A stretch of DNA of 64,000 nucleotides from the NCBI GenBank assembly GCA_907165135.1, contig OU015569.1:9424001-9488000 (forward strand), in the 5' to 3' direction. Below are positions 1-50,300 of this stretch, piece by piece. Under the pieces are notes generated by a model, which did not search any database, was not told where the DNA came from, and saw only the letters and a program-made list of their open reading frames with translations. The position numbers were made by a program, and so were the translations under genes. Source of the DNA: Oikopleura dioica (lineage: Eukaryota; Animalia; Chordata). How positions within the stretch are numbered: the stretch's first letter is position 1; each line of letters starts with the position of its first letter.

Positions 1-348
1 GCTGAGCTGACCTGCGAAAAAATTTCTCTGAGCTGAGCTGAGCTGAGCTGGCCTACTTCGGAGGTTTCTGAGCTGAGCTGAGCAGACCTTTTGTTTAAGA
101 GAGTTGAGCTGAGCTGAGCTGAGCGGACCCTAATTAGAGCTGAGCTGAGCTGTTTTTTACTGTTTTTCGGTAGTAAAATTGTATTCAAATCATTGAGCTG
201 AGCTTAGCTAAGTGATAATCGTCTGAGCTGAGCTGAGCTGAGCTGAGTGAAAATTGTCTGAGCTGAGCTGAGCAGATCAGATCATTTTCCAAAATCACTG
301 AGCTGAGCGACTGCTCAGCTCACTCAGCTCAGCAAATTTGCAACTCTG
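1..348. mobile_element. Right-hand part of a hAT-like MITE with GCTGA subterminal repeat array (truncated by window start)
   Basis: Dozens of GCTGA/TCAGC units in 1-333 end in TTTGCAACTCTG (337-348), whose reverse complement CAGAGTTGCAAA matches the CAGAGTT TIR start of the two complete elements at 32982 and 49332. The left TIR and TSD lie outside the window. Confidence 0.7.
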
Positions 349-3048: not shown

Positions 3049-5708
3049 TTTTGGCTGTTTTCTTCTTTTCGAATATTTCGAATTTTGTAAATATTATATT
3101 TTTCTTTGCTGAGGTACTAAGGACCTGGAAAGAGCATTTATAGGACTGCCGAGTAGGCGCTAGAGCGCATATTCGCGTATGCTCAGGCCACTGCGGAGTA
3201 TGCCACCTAGCACAAAGTCTAAACCGCCGAACTTTTTGAAAAAATCAGTGAGTAGTAAAATTTTTCTTTTATGGAAAAACAACGTCGAGTGTCGACTATC
3301 ATCCACAGTTAAAAATGATTAAAGCGTCGCTGGTTAGAGTTTATCGCCAGATAACGAAATTTTTGAGTGTTGGCTTTCGACCGGTCAGTTGATCCTTCAA
3401 GTGATCTCCTTTTTCTCGATTTAGATAGCAAATAACCTCTACGAAATTAATCATCATATAAGTTTACTCGCTTCTAAAGAAAGATTTCCTCTACACATGA
3501 TGCGCGCAAGAGTTCGTTATCTTCGACTCGTAATTACTAGTCCAAGCCCTTCCACAAATCCTGCGTTTGCAGTTGTGAAATTTCATGATTAAATGCATTT
3601 ATCAAATCAAGTTTAAGTAGTCAGCCTAGCTAACAGATCCCGGTTATTTGTGTTCATCTATTAAATTCATTAAATCTTTATTAATATTTATATTATGCAG
3701 CAAGAGTTATTCAAGTAAATATTTTCGTATTTCTGTTTGTTTTAAATTTGAGTTCTTATTATTTTGTTTTTCAATTTTGAGAGGATATCCTTGCAAAAAG
3801 ATCTTTGAATAATAGTTTGTTTGTATACGCCTAAAAAGTTGCAAGGCAGTGCGAGGTGAGCCCACGTGCGATAGACGATTAGGGGTAAGAGATTACCGAC
3901 TAAGTCTGTTAAAGGTTGCACACAAAGTGAACTAAGCAAAGTCAGAGCATGTCATTTTGAAAGTGAACGCCAACAATGTCGAGCTAACCACAACGTTGCA
4001 GAGCTCATTCGAGCAAGAAATAGATAACTATCGTGTAAGTATTGCTTATTGCTTCATTTTTTCTTGTATATGTAGTTTTTGAACTTTATTAATCTTATAC
4101 AATCCGTGATATAGATGGTTCTATTTATAATCCTATCGATCTTTAGTAAAAATATTCACGTTTTAATTGGGGTAGTTACTTCCACATATTTCGAATATAC
4201 AATGTAACTATTAAAGGGATCAGAAATTCAAGTTTAAGACTTGTAATTGACTCTGGAATGATGGAATATGTTCGATAAGTGGCGATCCCGGAACTGGGCT
4301 ATGGTTTCCAGACGTCGATTAAAGCTATTAACGTAGCAAGAGAAAATCGTGAGTGTGTGGATAGTGTTGAGATATCAGTCTCGGAAAAGCGGGAAATCGC
4401 CGTCGGAGTCAGGTTAAAGGACGCGCGAGGGCCACGTTGGCCGTAGAACGGGGCCGAGCTTTGACGCTCGACGGAATCACGTAATTCGAGCACACTCCCG
4501 CCCCGACGTTCTGGAAGACACCCCGACGTCCATAAATATTCTTTGCCGTGCGTCCTCACGCAAGACGACCTCGGAAAACTTCATCCGCGCAAATGATCAC
4601 ACGCACTTTCTCAAGCCCTTTTACTTGGTCATTCTCAAGCTCAACGTGAGCGAAAATAAAATTCTGAAAATATTACTGCAAACAAACTAGCCTGTCTTTA
4701 TCCTAAACAATCGAGGTACACTCACTGATGTCAACGAACAGCCAAATTAAGCTACTAAATATAAATTGACCACGTAAAAGCGATTCATATGCTGATTCAC
4801 CCCATCAATTCTTACATTCATCTTTCCTTACTCCAAACATCCACGTTTAATTAGTCCGTTGAACCCGTGATTAGTACACTATTAGTTAAACGGGTTAACT
4901 TGTGGATCTCTTTCGCTCAAATACGGTCGATTCATCATTCCGTCTTTTGGGTTTTTGCTAAATTCACTTTGCCAAAAGTTAAATCGCCGCAGTGGTTAAA
5001 TCGTTCCTTGGTAAAAACCACCTGGATCCTAGCTGGAGAAGGCGATAAGCATCGAGATTTAATGCTGTCTATTCATGCAGAGAGAAAGAAAATCTTAATC
5101 CGCTCTGTTGGTACTTTTTACAAGCGATGGTTGATAGATAAAAGCGGCAATCGCATTGCATCGTTTACGTAAACTAAATGCAAGAAACACGCGCAGCCAA
5201 TTATTGTCAATCCACGATAACTCTCGATTTTAACGTTATTATCTGAGCCCTTGCAATGCTGTTTTCGTTAATAGTAATCAGCGTGTTTGTTCAAAGCAAA
5301 GGCAAAAGATTACTCGGCCACAAGAACTTCTCCCTCGGTGAGCCAGTCGGTCAACCAAATGCCCACTTCAAGAAGCTAAAAACCAAAACAGGAAGTCCAA
5401 AATTATTTGCGAAAAAATTTCGCCCCTACCGCGAATCTCGCTCGAGACGCTTCAATTCATAATCCAAAAAAGGCTGTTTGTTGGCCACACTGCATTCAAT
5501 GCTTTCAGTTCTAGGCGCTTGTCTAAGAGACCTCCCGTTTTTGATAGTAGATACCGCCCCTTACGTCCACTACGGAACATTTAATTATATTTTGGGGCGC
5601 CGAGTATATAACCCACCTTCGCTATCTTTCAAATCAAATCAACACGAACTTCACCAAAAGAAGTAACTCAAGAGTAACTCGCGCAGATCTCCATCAAAAG
5701 AAGAAAAA

Positions 5709-28425: not shown

Positions 28426-31400
28426 TTAAAATAGGCAAGAGTCGCGTAGGCGGCCGAGGCACGAATCGACGCCGACTTCTTGGGCCTCGTGCCGTCGATG
28501 ACGCATTTGGATGCAGGAACGATCCATTGGCAGTAGATCGACTGGTCTTCTGCCTAAATGACAGTACTCTAAAAAGCGCCTACAAATCACTATAGATGAA
28601 AAATAATTTCTTAGTTTACCACAAAAGGTTCTATGCTCACTAATTCATCGCGAAATTGGATTCTCGTTGTCTACAGAATTATCCATAGAAAGGAATAATC
28701 GCTTCGTTGAATAATTTACCGGCAGTAGACGTAGAAAGGAAAAACAGCTGGACGTAAAACTATCAGATTCATAAATTTCGAAGCGGTTTTCGATGGGAGC
28801 GATAAACGCGAGAAACGAGAGACGTTTTTTGTCCCCCCTCTTTTGTGACAGTTCCATGCAAAAGGGGCCCTTGCGTCAGGGATTTTATTGATCATGCGCT
28901 TCTGCATCTGCTCGTTGGCACGGAGTCGCACGGTGAAACAGAATACCGTGAACTTGGCGAGCTCGTTTGTGCAAAAATAGACACAATGGCACTTGGCTCC
29001 ACTGCTGGCCTCTTGAGAAACGAACACAAAAGTTTGACATTCTGTTACAGTTTATTCGCGGCTTTAGATTAGGTAGATGGAGTTTGCTTGCGAGTCCGCA
29101 CCAGTCAGCTGGTCGCAGCGTCCTTTCAGCTTCTTCAAAAGCTACACCATTCATGTCCATCAGAAGTTAGAAACTAACTTGTTACCTGTTTAGTGCTCAA
29201 TCGGAGTCGATCTAATGTATCCTGGGGTTTTTCATTATCCGGTGCCTCAAAGAGCTTTAGATTATAAAAATTCGAGATATCCACCTGTGCCATGTTTCTT
29301 TCTAAGTTCGTGAATCTTTGCCGTATCGCTATAAGTAAATAATGTGGTGTTAATTAACAGAATCATTCTTACACTGACTAGGCCTGGAAGAAAGTCTAAA
29401 GAAGCCAGCCCAGAGATTGAAGAGGACAAGAAAGCTTTCAGAGTGAAACTGCTGCAGCGACTCTAGAACAGTCAGAAGGTGCGCTACGATGATTGTATTA
29501 ATCTCAGAAGAGCTTCCCGGGGATTTCGTTCCCATAAGCGCAAGCATCCCAGGAGTGACTTTGATCCAGAATGCAATGATATTCGCCTCTTTGTCCATTG
29601 TTTGGCAAATAATCTCAACGTAAATGGTCTTTTTGGCGGATTTCTAATTGAGTTATTGTAAGTTAAAATTATAACCAAAACTAAAGATAAAATGCGCAAT
29701 CCTACCACCCATGCGATCATAAAGCTGAAAGAATAAAAGAGAATTGATGACTGGTTGAGTTCGTTCGTAGAGTTCACACTTGGATATGCGGAGAATAAAT
29801 GACACATTCGGTCGCCGAGGGAGTTCTTAGTTGAAATTGTCTTCCGACGGTGGAAAAAATAGACTACCTGTAAGTCAAATGATATCGGCTCCCATCGCGA
29901 TAGAAGTGAATCTCGTGGCAGTGTGCAAAAATTTGTAAGGGCGCCAAGAAGGATCCAGTACTGCTCTTGGAAATGTCTCATTAGTTGAAGAACTTGTTCG
30001 CTGGATGCATCCAAGGTTGACAAACTCGAATTTCCTTGTCCCAGGCTGTCAGCTTTGATGAAGTTTAAGACTTGTCCGATGGCGACTTTTAACTCTACAA
30101 CGGTGGAGTTTCGAAGCAAAGCGTCGCTCAGTACCGTCGACGTGCCTAAAATAGAAAGAGGAGTAGCAATAGTTGATCCAATCGTCTTTTCTTCTTTAAC
30201 GCGATCCGAATCGGCAACGACGCATATGTCTTTTTCGTAAAGTAACTCTGTCAAATCTGAAGCAAGAGATTGGAATGGCGAAGTCAAGGAGGTCTTTTGC
30301 CGCTTTTCGGTGATTCGTTTTTCGTCTGATCCGAAAATATACTGCTCCACGTGCTGCTCAATCAGCCAGGTTGCTTCGTAATCAAAGAGAAGTATTTCAA
30401 TAAGCTTTCGAAAGGTTTATTCTGAGCGCCTAATAGCCTAACAAGTTATAATTTCAGAAACCTAGCTTGAAAAGAGCGCAGAAAGAAACAGATCGTCGGT
30501 TAAAAAAAATCCCCGCAAATGGAACAAGAATGAGCTTCTGGAAATTATGGCGCTCTCGGTCCTTTGAGGAGTACTTGTGAATAAGCCGAATAAGTTGAAT
30601 TAGCTCGTTGCTTTCGTAGTTTCCAGATTTTAGAGCGACGTTTATCGATTTCAGCGTTAAATCAATCGTCGGCTTGGGAACTAGATTATAAGGAGCGATC
30701 ATCTTCCATAAGGCCACAACTGCACCAAGCAGACCAATGTTGATATCTTTGTTTTCCGAGCATAACTGAACAAGTTTCGAAGCTTCTTGGTAATCCTCAT
30801 CGTGGCTTTTATTTTCGATATTTTCGTCAGAAACTATCTTTATTTTCTAATAATAAGAGCTTTTCCTGTTGCTTTATATTTTGACGTTGCCCGAAGTGCA
30901 TTTCGAAGCTTTCTAAATAGGCTTTGAAATTTCGCGCAAAGTTTGGGGATTTCAACGAGTCGCCGTCCCCATCGAGAAGCGTCACAATAAGTTCAGCTGG
31001 GCTAATGCCACGGTGATCCTTGAGAAGGAGAGTGTAACAAAGATGCGGTCTTCAACAAGTAATTCAAAGACCGCGGGGAGTATTTTGTGTCCTTTGAGAT
31101 GGAAGAGCACAGAGACGAGCAGTTGCCTTGGAATAATGGGAACATCGTCTCGTTGAACGAGCGTCACGAGAACATACAGAAGAGGATTTATGAAGCTGGC
31201 AGCTCGTTTAGTTTGCCTTCTTACGAATTCTGCCAAGCACGTCATCGCTAAAATGTAGACTTGATCTTCGAAATATTCCTTGACATGTCCGCAGACAATG
31301 CAATAGCCACTTTCTTTATCAACTTCAAAGAAGTCGCTCGTATTCAACAACTGAGTGACATCGTCGGAGATGTTCCTCGCTAGAAGAGGGCGACCCGGCT

Positions 31401-34400
31401 GTTCGCAGGTTTTGGCCGGGTAGTGCTGTACGCAAATGTACGCGGTGGTGGATTGCGTTCATCCCGATGGTAGATTTTGCGCAGGACTTTCAATTTTGAG
31501 AATTTATGTTCGTGCCCACGAACAAGCCCTCGCCCGAGTTTTCCGCGAGCATAGCCCTGAAGACCAACAGTTCTCCGTAGTATGCATTCGTGGATCGAGT
31601 TATGCAATGTCAGTAAAGTTATATGAAGGATTTTAGTCTGGAGATTAGTGTCGGCCATCGTAGTGAGATCATGCTTGTACAACGTAACAAGCAAGGATTC
31701 TAGCCAAGCACATCGAAGCTCTGGCTGAAGATGAATTAACGAGTAGGTCGGCATGTTGTCTCCTGTTGGATCCGACTCAGACGCAGAATACAACAGCAAA
31801 TTGAGAATGAATGACATCAGATGTCCAGATAGTTCGATGTTTGAATCCAGTATCTTCGGTAAATGAAGCAGAAACGGTGGAAACACAACACATTCGCGCA
31901 AATTTGTGGGTGAGAAATTTGAAGCGAATTGGCTTATATTCGTAAAACCAAAAGCACAATAAAGTGCTTAGAAAAGATGCGAAACTGTTTCGTGTCGACG
32001 TCACTATTATCTCCAGCAATGATAAAGCGACAAACACACCCAACGAGTTCTGTAAGAGTTATTTGGTCATTTTCTTCGATCGTAGTGCCTTGGTTGATGT
32101 CCATTTTTCGGCAATAGAGTAGCAGCCCGTCGGAATCCCATTGGGAGACTGTCGGTTTTCCATCGAAGTAGCGTAGTGCTGATTTGAAAAAGACGTTACG
32201 GGATAAAGCAGTTTTAGAGGGATGCAGAAATTTAGTCCGAGATCTTTGCAGACTTGTGCTTCTAAAATTGAATCAGTAGATATAAACATGATTAAGAGCT
32301 GTCTCACCTACTGAAAACAGAATGAGGCTTTGGTTGAAAAACCCCCAGTTCAACAATTTTGCATCGGGGCGAAGCAAATGAAGCTGCTCGATTCTTTTAA
32401 AAATGATGCAGCGATCACGAAGAATATTCCGATACTGAAACTCGAAGCAGGAACAGATCGCCAGAAGACTCTTTTTCGAAAATGTATCACATAAAAACTT
32501 GACTCTTCTGTTCAGCGAGGGAACTGGGGATGACGAAAGGTCCAGAAGAGCAAAAACGCAGTAACTAACTGCATAGCAAACAACTGGGCATCTTATGATT
32601 GCTGAAGGTTCGACATGTTGAAGCAAGGAAGCAAGCTTGTTTGCCAGATCAAATTGCTTTTCCCACGGTTGATTGAGATAACTTTCATCCACGAGCTGGA
32701 TAAACTCTTCTGGTGCGCGAAAAATGTAAATGTAGGAGAGCATAATCTTCGCAGCATGCTTCGACTCCCCATCATTCGAGCCTAGTTCCGTCCACAGCGT
32801 TCTGATAATATCTCGGTGATGCGTTGACAGAATATGTGATTCCGGAAGAGCGCGCAAATTTTCCAAAATCGAGGTCTTTGTTGTTATCATTTCTAGTAAA
32901 TGCCCAAATTGTTCAGCAACTTCTCCATTTTGGGAGTTCACAGTTTGCAAGACTTCTTGCGCTTCAGCGAAAAGCTGGAACCAGAGTTCAAAAACCCCGC
33001 GATTTGCCCGGGCACAGGCGGGCGCGGGCTCGGAATGGAAAAATGGTCGGGGGCTCAGGCGGGCGCGGGCACAAAATTGATGATGCTCGGGGGCTCAGGT
33101 GGGCGCGGGCCCGAAACTGAAGGTGCCCGCGGGCTTACGCGGGCGCGGGCGAGAAATTGAAGGTGCCCGCGGGCTCACGCGGGCGCGGGCCCTTGCCCTC
33201 CTGCTCGCGCCCGGCCGCGCCCGCGAGTAGAAAGTGACCAAATTTCAATCGGTATTTTCAGCTTCAATTCGATGACTTGAATAAGTTAACCGTCAAAAAA
33301 TATGCAAAAATGGTATAAAAAGTTCGAAAATTTGCGAAAATCTTGATTTAGACCAAATTTTGAGCCAATTTTAGGGGTTATTTTAAAAGAGAACTCTTTC
33401 ACGGGTTTCCGACAAAAGTCTCAATTTTTATTTAAAATTTCAAAGTTTTCGGCGAAAATTTCTTCTTCTCTTACGAAAACTGGCCGCGGCCTCTGACGGG
33501 CTCGGGCGCTTGAGCCCGCGAGGCCCGGGGGAGCAGGCGGGCAGCGTGCCCGCGCCCGGCCGGCCGCCGCTCCCCTGCCCGGGAGCCGAAAATTTTTGAA
33601 CTCTGGCTGGAACACGATTGTAGATGCTTCCGTATCGCCGCAGATATCTGTCTTTTTCTTGAAGAAAATGTCCCAAATAAGTTCGTTGATTAGTGCTAGC
33701 GTTGATGAGTGCCGATCCGAAATCGTGATTTCTGTTTTTAGCTGTTTTAGTGTTCGCAAGCAAATCTTGAGCAACACAACTGGCGGGAGACTTGACGAGG
33801 TGATTTTGATTTGATTATTCATAACAGAAAACATTGTATGAATCTGTGATTCTGTTGTTTCTGCGCTGTCCAATGCTTTTTCGAAGATCTTCTGTATGAT
33901 AGGAAGAGGGATGAAAACTGAGAGCCTGTTTACCGCAACTAAGTACTTTAGCGCCGTTGCAATGTTTGTGGACTGGAGAAATGACCAAATCTCGGCAAGG
34001 GAAAATGGCATGCTTACCAAGTCAGTGTCGAATAATTTCCATAGCGATTCTTCAAGAAGGCGTATTTTGAATTCCTTTGGGTATGTTATATCTATAAGAT
34101 CCTCGCAATAGAGAGGGATAGTTTTGTTCCAATCGTCGTGAGTAAGAAGTCCAAACGATCCTATCATTAGCAAGCTCTCTAGTCGGTTACAAAGCTTCGT
34201 GGGAGTGTCTTCATCTGACTCCCAATATCCAAGCCTCTGCATCTCGGGCGGAGGCGAAGGATGCAGTGACAGAAGAAATGATTTGGCGAAATGCTTCTTG
34301 TATTCCTTAACCCACGGTAAAAGAGTCTGATTTTTCAAGTTGTCGACGACTAAATCGTTTCCCGTTGCATCAGACGAGACTGTCCGAGTTGTGTAGAGAA

Positions 34401-36000
34401 AGTTACAAATAACTGAGAATATATTGGAAAGATGAGCGTGAGGCGCCGAAGGATGAACAGGAGCTAGTTGTGCTAATAACGACGTTCCATACACGGCAAA
34501 GAGTGTGTCTAAGGGTTCTAGAGCATGTTCAAACGTTTTTACAATGACCTCTACAATGAGGCTCGCATCGTCTTCGTTGAGGTCCCACGCAATTTTCGGC
34601 GGACATTGGAAATGTAAATCTTCGACTTTCCTAAGGTTGAAGCATTCTTTGCAGTATCTCACAGCGCGTGGGTACTGATAAATCGTGTACGAGCTTTGGG
34701 TTTCTTCATTAAAATTGGAGAGATTAGAATGTTGAGTACTAGAGCATTCTCGATTCTCACAATAGCGCGCTAAGTTTTTCATTGGACGGAATAAAAATAT
34801 AGTCGGCTCAAATTCTTCTTCTCCGTCTTGATAGCAAGTCTCACAGATATACAGCGGTGCTGGGATTTGTCCATAAGTAGACTCTGCTGCTGCCTTCCCG
34901 CTCAAGCAGATTCGAGTAGCCTTTTCACTGTGAGATGTGCAAAGACTGCTTTGACAAGGTATCTGGTTCCAAAATGGAAACTGAGTTTCCAGGTTAAACC
35001 CAGGGTAAAAGCCATAAAAGAGCGACGGAAAATAGTGAAAAACCATGGGCAAGACCTCCGATCGAACGTTCGGCCAACCATAAGCAATCAATTGGAATAG
35101 ATCTCGCCATATGTAGTCGCGCTGCTGCATGAGTATTTCGACGGCTTTGTAGAGGGAACTGGGTAAATTGAGATAAACTATCGTCGTCAATAGTTTCGGA
35201 ATTACGGCGTCGATAACGTGGTTACAAGTTTCTTCGGATTTCAGGCGAAGTAGGAGCACCGGGAGAACCAGATCCAGCGTGTGGCTTAAAACGAACTCCA
35301 CCTTATAGTTTTGGTTGAGCATGGCATCAAGAAAGAGGAGAAGTTCTGTCAGTTGAGCTGGACGCAAGAATAGAAGAGCAGAATGAACACATTCGAAGAG
35401 ACTCTCGTGTAGGGCTTCGAAACTTTTTTCATCTTCGTCTGGTGAATATGATCATCTGCTGAGCAGCACTTTTCAGCTTTTGGCAGCTGGCTAATCAGAC
35501 CGCGAAGTACTTCTACAACAAAGTCTATATTGTATCCTTTCATTTCCACTTCTCCTTGGTTATTTATCATAATACGATTTTATATAAAATCTATTGTTTT
35601 AAGAAAACCAAAGCCTTCAGGAACATGAGATAAACCGACAAGGGCTTTGCTTAGGAATTTAATCTTGTGAGTGAGCGAACTTTTGTGATTATCATTATCC
35701 AAGGAGAACTCTTCTCTGATATTTTTTTCACAAAAAGTTATGCAATTGAATCAAATGATATGTAAATTAGCTGAATTCATGAAAAAAACGGCCCTGAATT
35801 CATCCAAATTGACTTCTGCTCTTTGGTAGAAATGAACAAGGCCATCTAGCTTTTCTCTAAATAACTCTAGCTTACTCATATGAAAATAAGAAATTGTTCT
35901 TTCCCTCAGCCATGTGTGCCTAAATCCGAAAGCCGTCGGTGTTAATTGGGTTTCGCATCCAGGATCGATTCCCCTGATCTTTGCACCAACATATTGAGCT
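28426..36000 (-). CDS. UNC79: UNC79, NALCN channel complex subunit
   Basis: IWRDLFQLIAYG...MVFHYFPSL...CQSSLC...PAPLYICETC...RAVRYCKEC matches the UNC79 N-terminal region as recalled. An upstream exon AQYVGAKIRGI resembles the UNC79 start. Many downstream helical exons follow. Both ends are approximate. Confidence 0.85.
32982..33605. mobile_element. Non-autonomous hAT-like MITE (624 bp) inserted in a UNC79 coding exon
   Basis: Perfect 13-bp TIR CAGAGTTCAAAAA/TTTTTGAACTCTG, 8-bp TSD GCTGGAAC at 32974-32981 and 33606-33613, GCGGGCGCGGGC subterminal repeats and an AT-rich core. Confidence 0.95.
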
Positions 36001-36257
36001 ATCTAATTGCTCTTTTAATGAACCCGCATAGCGATTTGATAATTTGAAAGAAGAACTATATTAAAGCTCGCTCTTTCTCTCCAAAATACGCTCACTGCAA
36101 ACTGCAAGTCCAAGTTTTTCGCCGTTGGAATAATCAATTCAAGAGCAGGTGAAGCTGCTTGTGTCGTCATCAATTTTGCATTGTAAAGCGCTCAATGGAA
36201 CCCATATCGCTTTCAAGCTTATTTTTGAATTCAGTCCCAAGTATTTCTTTACCTTCG

Positions 36258-38578
36258 ATGAGAAAAGTACTAAAACAGCTTTTTATATCAACAATAATCG
36301 GTTTTTTAATCGGCCACTTCATCAGAGAAAAAACTAGTAGGAAATTCATTCGCTGCCCGAGAAGGAGAAATATTGGGATTATTTTTGTGCTAACAACAAC
36401 GAAGTACATACAGAGGGAAAAAGCAATAAGAAATACTTGGGGAATCGCCGCGAAGTCGCGAGGGTTTCAAGTGGCTTTTGTACGGCATCAGACAAGTCGA
36501 AAATTTAATGACGTTATCGAATTTCCAAATGTTCCGGATGAAGTTTACCCACCGCAGAAGAAATCTTTTGCTTTATTCCGATATGCCTGGAGACACCTTA
36601 TTCACCAATACGATTGGTTTGTAAGAATAGACGACGATGCCTTTTTGAATAGCGATGAATTGGAGAAGTTTCTACGAAAGTTGAACTCGACGAGAGTTCA
36701 TTATATAGGAGCACCTGGCTATGGGCGGCACTCCGCTGATTTTGTAGAAGGAAACAAAACTTATTGTATGGGCGGAACCAGCATCATGAAAGGGTTGACA
36801 ATAATATGAATATTATTTATAATATATACATATATAATATATTATGATATAATATTTATATATATATACGTATAATATTATAGCCTATAATTTATAGGAT
36901 ATTATTAATATCAATGATCATATCATCGAGAAGGATATTAGCCCTAATCTGATCTTTTCAAAACTCTTAAAAAGACTGAGCAATGAAGCAATTCGACAAA
37001 TCGGTCCACATTTACTCACTTGTGCAAGACAACTCTACTCAGAACACGAAGATGTCGAAATCGGACGGTGCTTTTGGAATCATCTCAATGTTTCTTGCAC
37101 GACGGCGAAAGATGCTTCGAAGTTATTTTTTAACAATTTCAAAAAAGATTACGGCTACTATGATAATCTTGGCTACATTTCGGCACGAACAGTTTCACAT
37201 GCAATCACTTTGCATGCAAATAAAGACCCCAAATATCAAAGTCTCACGAATGCAATAATTCTACGTCAAAAGTTGAAAACATTAAGGATGGTTTCAAACA
37301 GTAATAAAACCAATCAAGTCATTTTATTTTTGAAACCTTTCAAAGAAAGAATATAAAGCTTCTTGAGTTTCGCGAAAGATCAATGGCAAGCAATATGAGC
37401 GCGATATATCTGAGCGAATTTAGGAATAACTGTAACCAGAAGAGTGTATTCAGCGCTATGTCAGAATGGCGCCTTTACACAAGCTCAGAAGATCGAGTCA
37501 ATCAGGCTGTTGCGAATCCTTGGCGAGGTTTTTCACGACCCTCTTTCAAGAAAGTTCAAATCGTCTATTTGATGGTGAAGAAATTGGTCAAATTGAGATT
37601 CCAGTGTTCTATTACAGCGAAAACCAGGCAATCGCACGCCTTCAAACAATCGACCCGAGCACGAACAAGTCTTCAGTCAGTCTTTTTCATTCAAAGATGG
37701 AATACGGCCCGCCGGAAACCAATTTAAAATCTGTTGACAGCATCGAAGTTCTATTTGTCATACCGATTAGCGGAAAGTCGACAGCATTAGCAACATTTTT
37801 CGACTGGTGGAAGTCAACGCTAAGGATGGAAGTTTCTCTACTCTTCGCAATAATGGGAGACAGCCAAACTATAAACGAAACTATCTCAAACATCAAGCCC
37901 TGGAAAGAAAAATATCCAAACACAGTCAATTATTTACGGGTTTTAATTTCTAAGCATCAAGCTACGTAGTTTCAAAAATAAACCTCGCTCAGAACATCGT
38001 CAAAGGGACTTTCTCTAGAGGAATAGCTCTCCAAAGGGCGCTGATGAGAATGAAGAAAGAACGCATCATTTTCGTGTCAGACGTGGATCTGCAGATATCA
38101 ATGGACACAGTCAGGAGGATCAGACTTTTGACGGAGCCCGGACGAGCTTATTTTCCTGTTTTCTTTAGTGAATATGAAGACCGCAAAAATGGCTTTTGGC
38201 GTAGATTCTCATATGGGATGTTTTCAATGTTTCTAAGGTATGTTGTGGAGAGATTACCATAATAACTGTGTGAGTTGCAGCGATTTCCAAAAGAGCGGCG
38301 GATTTCGAATGTCTCGATCTGGCTGGGGAGGTGAAGACGTAGAGGTAGATAGAAGGTGCGTGTTTGATTTGATAACTGTTCAGTTTTACTCAAAAGTACT
38401 CCAGAAATTTGAAACCGTTCGCGCTATCGACCCCGGAATTCGTCACATCTTTCACAAAAAGAAATGCCATCTTAGTCTGCTTCCCAAAACGTTGACTGAC
38501 TGCAGAAAATCAAAAATGTCCCACAAAGCGGACCAATTCCAGCTGTACAAACTTGCACTTGAGAAATTAATAAAGTGA
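36258..38578 (+). CDS. CHSY1: Chondroitin sulfate synthase
   Basis: TM anchor. Motifs YPPQKKSF, WFVRIDDD, YCMGG, HEDVEIGRC, C-terminal FVSDVDL, YFPVFFSEY, GGF...GWGGEDV and HIFH. Confidence 0.92.
36805..36915. repeat. AT-rich low-complexity tract inside a CHSY intron
   Basis: Almost pure TA/ATA/TATT sequence. Confidence 0.8.
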
Positions 38579-38900
38579 TAAAATTTGATAAATGCCTGAA
38601 TAAATCCGCTTGAAGACAGTATTCGGTGATTTGAGTTTTCATAAAAAAGGATGGCAACAGAAAGAGAGAGGAAAGTAATATGTTGGGTCGGGGCTGTCAA
38701 AGTCAAAAAGACGAGCCGAAAATAGTCATCTATGATTTCAACGCGCCCGGCCCGCGCTAGTGCAATGGACGATTCCTTCGACTCAAAACTTTGCAGGAGC
38801 CTGATTGGCTTCGTTTCTCTCTAACCACGTGTTTCGAGGCATATTTAAACGGTCGTGACTCGTCCAAAACTGTCATTTTTTCTTAAAAAAAAAAGAGAAA

Positions 38901-47332: not shown

Positions 47333-50300
47333 ATGTCGTTTTCGAAGTTGCCACGAGTTTTGATATCCGAGGAAGCTTCCAAAGCAAAGAACCCTGGCCC
47401 AGGCGACTATGATCCAAAAGAAATCGACCGCTCAATCGCAGGTACCCTTGGTCTACTAGGATTTCTATAAAGCTTTTCTAGTGAGGATCGCGCCGAAGGG
47501 TACCCAGCAAGCAAAGAGATCGTTGGCTACTAAACCCAACTATCTCAGCAAGAAAGACGTATCCGGTGTAAGGAAGAAGCTGGATAGCAATGTCATGATT
47601 TCTAAAGTCCGACTCCAGCAGCTTACTGTGCAAGCTCAGCAATTCAAGGAAGGAGGAAAAATAATTCAAATTTATTATGTTCTTCGATTACTGTAGTAAG
47701 AATATCTTCTTTCAACCTCTTGAAAGGATGACAACGATATTCTGAAGAAGACTCTGGATAGCGTCGAAAAGGAGCGAAACCAAAGCTGGACACAGCTCAA
47801 AGAAAAAAAGGCCTCTCTAAAAGAGATGGAAGCCAGGCTCGAATTCTACGAGCAGCAAAAAGTTGAGCTTGAGAACGAGCTTGCATCGAAAACCGAATTA
47901 TTGGATAAAGAAAAAGAACGAGCGAACTCTGTTGGCGACACCCTAGCTGAAATGAAGAGCAAGTTCTCGGCGCTAACACTCGATTCCGAGTCACAGGAAG
48001 AAGAAAAAAGTAGACTCACTGCGGACTTATCCATCAAAATAGCTTCGTTGGAAAAAGCACAAAGCGAGATTGAGCACCTGAAGCAGGTTATTACAGAGCT
48101 GCGTTCAAGGATTGACTTCAACGAGAAAGAGCAAAGGGAAACGACGCAAAGATGTCTAGGAATGGAGTTAAAGCTGGCTAACTTTCTTATTTGTATTAAA
48201 TATGGAAGCAAAAATGTTGCGGTAGAACGGAAACAATTTAACTCTTGATAGACCTTGAGCTCGAAATCACGGAATGCAAGATTGACCTCCAGAATGCTCG
48301 ACAATCCTTCGCCGAGTTGGAAACTGACTACTCAATCAAAGATCAAAAGCATACCGCCACCATCGAATCTTTGAAACGCGAACTTGAGACTGAAAAATGC
48401 AAATACGAAACTCAAGTAGCAAAATTAGAGAGCGACCGCGTACGCGATGCTGAACAACACCAGTGCGAAGTTGTGGCACTCCAGACTCAGTTAGACAACT
48501 GGGAAGACATCTCGAGAAATTACGAGACTGAACAGAAAAAAAATCTTGCGGATATCGTCGCGCTTCAGGAGGAACTAGGCGTTCTGACAAAGGATTTCGA
48601 GAATTGCAAAGCTGACCGCGCAATTCTAATGAAACAAGTTGAAGTCGGCAACGAATTCGAGCTAAAGTGCGAGGCACTGCTAGAAGAGAATGCCGAACTG
48701 CAATTGAATCTGCACGATACAAGAGAACAAATGAAAGAGCTCGTCGAGCAGCAAGTAACATACGAGGACGAACTGGAGGAGCATTTCGAAGCTCTCATGC
48801 GAAATGTGGAAGGTTAATTCCATGAATCATTTAAATACATCTATTCAAAGCGTTTTTAGATCTGGACGAAGCCAAGTCAAAACTATCGGAACTAGAGAAC
48901 GAGCGAGACGTAATTGTCCGCGAATTGCAAATGTCCAAAGAAGCAAACGAATCTGTTGAGGCAGAACTGCAGAAGAGAATCAGCCAGGTCAACGACTCAG
49001 TTGTCGGTGGACTGATCAAAAAAGATGCTAGCGATGAGAAATACAACCGGTTGAAATCATCCGCGATGAAACAAGAAAAGGTCTTCTACGAGAAGATGGA
49101 AGGATTGACCAAAAAAATGAAAGAAGAAGAACGTCGTTTCAAGCAAATTATCGCTGATAGAGATGCCTTGCTCAAGTACAAAGACGACGAAAACACTCGT
49201 TTGCGGGTAATAATTGCATTCTTTTGCTTTTGTTTATTCACGAGTTGTAGAAAGCTGAATTTGAGAAGAAACAGTTGCACGAGATGGAGGTCAAAGAGCT
49301 CAAGCTTGCCCTTGAGAATGCCAGGGCAGAACAGAGTTTGAAATTTTCGAGACTCGCGAGCGGCTCACTTGAGAGCGGGCGAGCACGAGCATGATGCTCT
49401 TTGTGCTCCCGAGCGCATATATTTCAGCGTTCGCGCTCTTTGTGCTCGCGAGCACATTTCATTACGCGCTCTCGCTCTCCTGGCTCCCGAGCACTGGTCA
49501 AATTTTGCTCTCGCTCGATTGGCTCCCGAGCTGAAAAATCTGACTCGCGAGCAGCTTTCAAGAGCCTAAAATGATTCGACGACCCCGTAACTACTTCCAA
49601 ATGAGTCCCTCTCACAGGAGTTAGCACTTGGCGGTGGGCATCTTTTATCTGTTTACTCTCGGCTTTTCGCGTTCCGCTGCCGAGATTACGGACCTAATGA
49701 AGCTTGCACAAATCGGAAACACGAAAAATTGATCCACGAGAGAAATTTATCCATGAAAATGAATAATAACGCAAAAAATTGTTCCTTTAATTTTGCTCGC
49801 GAGCCGCTCGTGAGTCAATTCCATGGCGAGCACGAGAGCAGCCGCTCCCGCTCGTCTAGCTCCCGAGCATTGCCGACATATGCGCTCGTGCTCTCCGCGC
49901 TCGCGAGCGGTTTCAAATTTGGGCTCGCGCTCTTTTGGCTCTCGAGCAACTTTATTTTCATGCTCCCGCTCCCCTGCTCTCAGAGCAATGATAAATTTTT
50001 GCTCTCGCTCTTTGCGCTCGCGAGCATTTGCGAGCATTTCAAACTCTGGGGCAGAACTCGATCTTCAAACTCAACGAAACAATAATTTTGCAGCGCGCGA
50101 TGAACTAGCAACTAAAGTGGACGACGCAATTATAGAAGAGTTCAACGCCGAGAAAAATGTACTTGTTGAGCAAAACCAAAACTTACAAAAGGAGCTTGGG
50201 TCTTGATAAAAAAACATTTGTAATTTCTCATCATCGTCATCGCCTAATTAATTGATTTGTGTGTTCATATTTTGAGTGTTGTAGTGACCCGTCTAACAGA

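Follow-up and report, generated by a model that had tools for sequence, protein, structure and literature searches.

What becomes of a gene when a transposable element lands in one of its coding exons and the animal carries no second copy of that gene? In Oikopleura the question bears on more than a single locus, the genus being marked by very fast intron turnover and many non-canonical introns, with the origin of new introns argued from indirect evidence. The locus described here amounts to a natural experiment: the same exon occurs with and without an inserted element in one lineage, the carrier is hemizygous and the candidate splice donors would give distinguishable products. The original prediction, made from the letters of this DNA, placed a miniature inverted-repeat transposable element (MITE) inside an exon of UNC79 and held that it could be spliced out in frame only through a GA donor in its terminal inverted repeat (TIR) or through a GT in the exon just upstream. 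The element is there, with limits that we have refined and with perfect TIRs and a perfect target site duplication (TSD). The facts at the DNA level are firm: a hAT element inserted here recently, the insertion is polymorphic, and the reference male was hemizygous for it. Its fate in the message is a matter of weighing several readings against one another.

The window, by which we mean the whole 64-kb stretch of DNA that was analysed, comes from the O. dioica assembly OKI2018_I69 (GCA_907165135.1, OU015569.1) and lies in the X-specific region (XSR). The public record of the locus (OU015569.1) matches window positions 40890-24059 with 0 mismatches, and a protein search found the exon downstream of the element to be 100% identical to the protein Oidioi.mRNA.OKI2018_I69.XSR.g16074.t1. 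On the upstream side, the open reading frame at 33607-35367 contains the UNC-79 domain (Pfam PF14776, E = 8.6e-40), while HEAT_UNC79_C (PF26723) is found on the downstream public model at 30901-29064; UNC79-sized full-length relatives were recovered in a representative search. With its N-terminal domain and C-terminal HEAT region collinear, the gene is, on sequence grounds, UNC79, a subunit of the NALCN channel complex. The public annotation contains no model that bridges the element. Model g16074 begins inside the downstream part of the exon, at about 32890, that is, after the element, and ends at a break in the reading frame near position 32103, and the N-terminal third of UNC79, at 32891-38900, carries no annotation. 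A 216-aa open reading frame on the plus strand (36159-36809) falls within this publicly unannotated stretch.

Two sequences served for comparison. One, X26, is a DNA run with the same species label from another study, about 1.8% different from the window, whose contigs were compared over 30400-36000; the other, L001, is a contig from a related lineage, syntenic with the window and 67-80% identical to it in nucleotides. Exons on both sides of the element had been described as long and intact, but the assembled coding sequence of UNC79 is one base short at five homopolymer sites (35424, 32103, 31949, 31409 and 31026), at each of which both X26 and L001 carry the extra base. Because the assembly is Nanopore-based and the region has half coverage, the one-base contractions are most likely assembly errors, and they account for the splitting of the public UNC79 annotation into pieces. 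Were these deletions real, the allele would be dead regardless of the element.

Read along the minus strand, on which the gene lies, the insertion site runs ...ATCGT, GTTCCAGC, CAGAGTTCAAAAA ... TTTTTGAACTCTG, GTTCCAGC, TTTTCGCTG, and excising the element together with one copy of the TSD restores ...EASTIVFQLFAEAQEV... in the frame of the exon (Table 1). A blind scan for 8-bp duplications bordering inverted ends 11 nt or longer returned two elements in the window, this one included, and 0 hits in five shuffles of the window. Besides the GC-rich array near one of its ends, the element has a shorter GC-rich block at the other and an AT-rich core, and the RNA fold computed for it (z = -6.9) has the two TIRs paired in a closing stem. 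The open reading frames listed inside it are either read-through or repeat-derived, and none is long. Terminal inverted repeats of hAT transposons begin YARNG; the TIR here starts CAGAG. Because of the 8-bp duplication, the CAGAG ends, the small size and the lack of a long internal reading frame, we assign the element to the non-autonomous hAT type, and all of the features considered (duplication, ends, size without a transposase gene, copies and mobility) agree with this assignment.

Table 1. Features of the interrupted UNC79 exon, the inserted element and the candidate splice pairs, in window coordinates.
Feature	Positions	Strand	Remarks
Upstream part of interrupted UNC79 exon	33614..35367	-	About 584 open codons; unannotated publicly
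Exonic GT (ATC/GTGTTC), candidate donor	33614..33615	-	-9 nt (TILFAE), from splice arithmetic
TSD copy 1, 8 bp, GTTCCAGC	33606..33613	-	At the X26 joint, 8 letters fit both sides
Non-autonomous hAT-like element (MITE), 624 nt	32982..33605	-	TSD/TIR scan; with one TSD copy, equals the stretch absent from X26
5' TIR (gene strand), CAGAGTTCAAAAA, 13 nt	33593..33605	-	Contains GA 33603-33602 and GT 33601-33600
Stop codon on retention of the element	33421..33423	-	After 61 element-encoded residues, by translation
4.5-copy array of a 40-nt GC-rich unit	33009..33190		Near one element end; repeat scan
3' TIR (gene strand), TTTTTGAACTCTG	32982..32994	-	Pyrimidine-rich tract directly before the TSD acceptor
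TSD copy 2, GTTCCAGC	32974..32981	-	AG 32976-32975 is the candidate acceptor
Downstream part of interrupted UNC79 exon	32308..32973	-	Ends at the GTGAGA donor 32307
Candidate pair, GT (TIR) to AG (TSD), 627 nt	33601 to 32975		+5 nt, frameshift, stop after 12 codons
Candidate pair, GA (TIR) to AG (TSD), 629 nt	33603 to 32975		+3 nt, +1 aa, VFQPLFAE
Candidate pair, GT (exon) to AG (TSD), 641 nt	33615 to 32975		-9 nt, -3 aa, TILFAE
A slash between sequence letters, here and in the text, marks the boundary between exon and intron.

The family is not confined to this site. Summed over the element, X26 contig depth reaches 370-920, against 66-71 on the flanks, a ratio that is not an exact copy number, and some of the X26 pieces differ by one mismatch per ~100 nt; the high depth and the near-identical pieces point to several young copies. 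The second element returned by the scan, hAT-like and related, occupies 49332-50048 (717 nt) within a coiled-coil coding exon of a gene on the plus strand, with ends CAGAGTTTGAAAT and TSD GGGCAGAA. It shares the CAGAGTT ends and the 8-bp duplication with the UNC79 element, and its empty site reads ...LENARAELDLQ.... There, the GT of the element's end paired with the AG of the duplication would leave +6 nt, in frame, from a weak donor (GTTTGA). For this geometry, subtracting from 12 the place that the G of the AG holds within the duplication gives the net change in length, so that one insertion in three is in frame by chance and the pair shows no design. A third element, sharing this end core (…TTTGCAACTCTG), is truncated by the start of the window, so that its right end remains, at window positions 1-348; it is rich in GAGCT repeats and has the flank GAACCAGT, and no clear coding context on either strand.

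The original prediction had proposed a survey of populations for the insertion, and an allele without it exists. One X26 contig of 1077 nt, at depth 69.7 (flanks 66-71), joins position 32973 to 33606 and leaves out exactly 632 nt, 8 letters at the joint being ambiguous. Since 632 nt is the length of the element plus one TSD copy, X26 carries the exact empty site, and the insertion is therefore polymorphic within the Okinawa lineage. The L001 exon is also uninterrupted at the site (ASTIVSQLFGEAL in the relative P0061), and exact scans of JGI metagenome contigs gave no match to the flank plus TSD and none to the element's end. What we have before us is thus a recent insertion of a hAT-type element into a UNC79 coding exon and, we infer, not an established intron; with the insertion missing from X26, any long-term tolerance is putative.

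The source of OKI2018_I69 was one fully mature male from a laboratory culture at generation 47, and males are haploid for the XSR (PMC8008620). Given an XSR locus and a single-male assembly, the element-bearing allele is hemizygous and was the animal's only copy of UNC79, so that no wild-type copy masked it. The listed differences between the window and X26 that fall within recognised coding frames are nearly all synonymous, which places UNC79 under purifying selection in the lineage and indicates that the haplotype with the element has not long been decaying. Two explanations were rejected on these grounds: a long-decayed pseudogene, because the X26 differences are almost all synonymous, and tolerance through heterozygosity, because the record is the X-specific region of a single male.

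Recomputation leaves the splice arithmetic of the original prediction standing: the positions of the acceptor AG, of the GA and of both GTs are correct, as are the two intron lengths of 629 and 641 nt with their peptides, and the GT in the TIR does shift the frame when paired with the AG of the TSD. The two donors that were said to be the only in-frame routes both keep the frame, but GC 33627, GA 33630 (ACG/GAAGCA), GA 33636 and others also work with the same acceptor, in frame and free of stops. The acceptor itself is reasonable, the T-rich inverted end being followed by TTCCAG. For the donors, a reference set of six was taken from UNC79, the neighbour gene and L001, each defined by two-lineage comparison or by a public model (GTAACA, GTAAGT, GTAAAT, GTAAAA, GTGAGA and GTAATA). 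All six have GTRA; none of the candidates (GTTCAA, GTGTTC and GAGTTC) does, and the exonic GTGTTC in particular is without the A at +4 found in the whole set. A donor weight matrix built on window introns deduced from the continuity of open reading frames was mostly noise and was dropped.

The GA donor has to be seen against what is known of the species, in which 11-12% of introns are non-canonical, GA-AG being common, and the median intron length is ~49 nt, so that an intron of 627-641 nt would be far above it. The published context of O. dioica GA donors is AG/GAA, with AG upstream and A downstream (PMC7072748), and the candidate, at CA/GAG, does not fit it. UNC79 itself contains a 70-nt GA-AG intron (30865-30796, minus strand; CAG/GAAAAG...GATGAG/GAT) that is absent from L001 and is likely a lineage-specific non-canonical intron; intron turnover within the gene is very high, to judge from the comparison of lineages. 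Three bulk RNA runs (X4-X6) yielded 2, 5 and 3 partial reads over 5.6 kb, at 90-95% likeness and none covering the site, and these probably derive from another cryptic lineage. No run in the RNA-run index was listed as containing the stretch, protein word-index searches with the upstream exon, the junction-spanning P0061 and the downstream exon recovered no same-lineage fragment across the site, and exact look-up of the window's open reading frames returned no record.

Taking these observations together, we give a probability of roughly 45% to a leaky allele, in which the polymorphic hAT insertion leads to mixed splice products, the make-up of that mixture being a guess. This ranks as the most likely explanation, followed by a plain null, a clean in-frame intron and an artefact. 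The pre-mRNA would most likely be spliced to the AG of the second TSD, behind the T-rich inverted end, with three weak donors lying within 15 nt of one another (GT 33601, GA 33603 and GT 33615) in competition for it, and only part of the message would stay in frame. Such a partially in-frame message would make the allele hypomorphic, neither wild type nor fully null. Some removal of the element from RNA is favoured by the hemizygous state, by purifying selection on the gene, by a permissive spliceosome and by the behaviour of exonic Ds1. Against an efficient, established intron stand the weak competing donors, the frameshift from the canonical pair, the absence from X26 and the survival of unc-79 nulls in worms and flies.

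The behaviour in question is that of the maize hAT elements Ds and Ds1 which, when exonic, are spliced from pre-mRNA via sites near their ends (Wessler 1991, to the extent that this work is relayed in PMC5432752); the donors and acceptors that exonic Ds1 provides lie no further than 35 bp from its ends (PMC5432752). As far as that account extends, the UNC79 insertion resembles them in being a non-autonomous hAT element with an 8-bp TSD in a coding exon, in having candidate donors a few bases from the 5' end and competing sites in different frames, and in the leaky allele to be expected. On the same footing, it differs in its animal host, with a permissive spliceosome, in an acceptor that comes from the TSD and not from inside the element, and in being described here at the DNA level only.

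A plain loss of function is the next candidate and a real, if lesser, possibility: the message would keep the element or lose it with a frameshift, leaving the animal without useful UNC79, and hemizygous males would still mature in culture. The most canonical of the available pairs (GT 33601 with AG 32975) adds 5 nt and meets an early stop, retention runs into a stop after 61 codons, and no public model extends across the element or onto the N-terminal exon. An X-linked null would be exposed in every male, yet the gene is under strong purifying selection in the lineage; on the other side of this argument, the insertion is not fixed, being missing from X26, the culture that gave the animal had reached its 47th generation, a setting in which behavioural selection may be relaxed, and C. 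elegans and Drosophila both survive the complete loss of unc-79. Neighbouring transposons can be read both ways. A second presence/absence difference within 1 kb (at 32295/32299) favours the null by showing a high rate of young insertions, whereas the hAT element that L001 carries in the same UNC79 exon and the second exonic element of the window would make better sense if RNA as a rule loses such elements. Should the element be unspliced, the sequenced male would have been a hemizygous knockout for UNC79 that matured sexually in culture, a result of relevance to NALCN function.

At the other extreme from a null stands the birth of an intron in a chordate, in which splicing would excise a polymorphic hAT element in frame from a constrained, X-linked neuronal gene by way of a GA-AG pair or a very weak GT donor. 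We consider this doubtful. The spliceosome would have to prefer that donor over the adjacent canonical GT, which frameshifts; in-frame removal, if true, would explain the viability of hemizygous males. That such removal is also efficient, giving a clean new intron of 629 nt (GA-AG, +1 aa) or 641 nt (GT-AG, -3 aa) along the lines that the original prediction favoured, strikes us as improbable, even with the arithmetic confirmed. Its acceptor is good (T-rich TIR, then TTCCAG), the TIR stem would bring the two ends together, the sequenced animal was a hemizygous male and GA-AG introns are frequent in O. dioica, with one in UNC79 itself; but the CA/GAG of the candidate fits neither the published AG/GAA nor the CAG/GAAAAG of that resident intron, the canonical GT two bases downstream of the GA competes and shifts the frame, the exonic GTGTTC departs from every reference donor at +4, and the insertion is polymorphic rather than fixed. 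Set beside the O. dioica GA-AG class (PMC7072748), the putative intron agrees in its first two bases (GA) and its last two (AG), and differs in context (CA/GAG versus AG/GAA) and in length (629 nt versus a median of ~49 nt).

Two further systems invite comparison with an intron born from a transposon. Introners are transposon families that create introns on insertion, in Micromonas, Aureococcus and others (PMC9860276, PMC11282704). The UNC79 insertion is like them in being an element with TIRs and a TSD in a coding exon, with one splice site in the element and the other recruited from the TSD, and in the small in-frame scars that are possible, the Aureococcus introner adding 4 bp of element plus an 8-bp TSD. 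It is unlike them in that the canonical pair drawn from element and TSD (GT 33601/AG 32975) is out of frame (+5), so that the introner property of a frame-keeping element-plus-TSD pair fails here and only a GA or an exonic donor keeps the frame; moreover, only two related exonic elements are visible, the element is long (624 nt) and its splicing is putative. The introner full texts that were consulted hold no mention of Oikopleura as an introner host, and in the 2025 survey O. dioica figures only through its genome paper, in the reference list. In Fritillaria borealis, another larvacean tunicate with miniature transposons inserted in its genes, the U2 spliceosome excises non-canonical introns derived from MITEs (Henriet et al. 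2019, as relayed in PMC11282704 and PMC13326754). By these secondary accounts its introns differ from the present case in that most have AG as their first two bases and AC or AT as their last two. Splicing of this AG-AC or AG-AT type was rejected here, because the lineage-specific introns that emerge from comparison of the window and L001 are GT-AG, GA-AG or GC-AG.

That the element was placed by misassembly or by a join of haplotypes is very improbable, even in a Nanopore-based assembly with five probable one-base homopolymer errors in the UNC79 coding sequence, since a perfect 8-bp exon duplication around perfect inverted ends is the signature of transposition and unlike a join, the sequenced male had a single copy of the region, which leaves no two haplotypes to join, and X26 diverges alike on both flanks (1.8% and 1.4%).

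Several smaller observations were made on UNC79 outside the insertion site. The L001 element in the same exon (L001 3122-3284) is 163 nt long and lies 152 nt downstream of the orthologous site, with duplication CTCTCAAC and with ends CAGGGATGTAAATT that are close to the ends of maize Ac; element plus duplication come to 171 nt, in frame, but with a stop inside. At L001 5122-5283 (alignment gap placed at 5119-5280) there is a 162-nt, element-like GC-AG insertion, AAG/GCGGGG...CGAAG/TTA. The window, for its part, has a 61-nt insertion relative to L001 in coding sequence (30468-30408, minus strand), flanked by the direct repeat AAGCT and with small inverted ends AGGTTTCTGA / TCAGAATAAACCT, within which no frame-keeping GT-AG, GC-AG or GA-AG pair was found. 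Four GT-AG introns of 42-47 nt are present in L001 (1741-1785, 2389-2430, 2757-2798 and 3545-3591) where the window exon is continuous. Finally, two X26 contigs break at 32295/32299, within an intron of 46 nt (32307-32262), and over ~24 nt the loose end of one is the inverted repeat of the other (GGCTGCCGTCGCTTTTGCCTGAGC), from which it follows that X26 carries another inverted-repeat element absent from the window.
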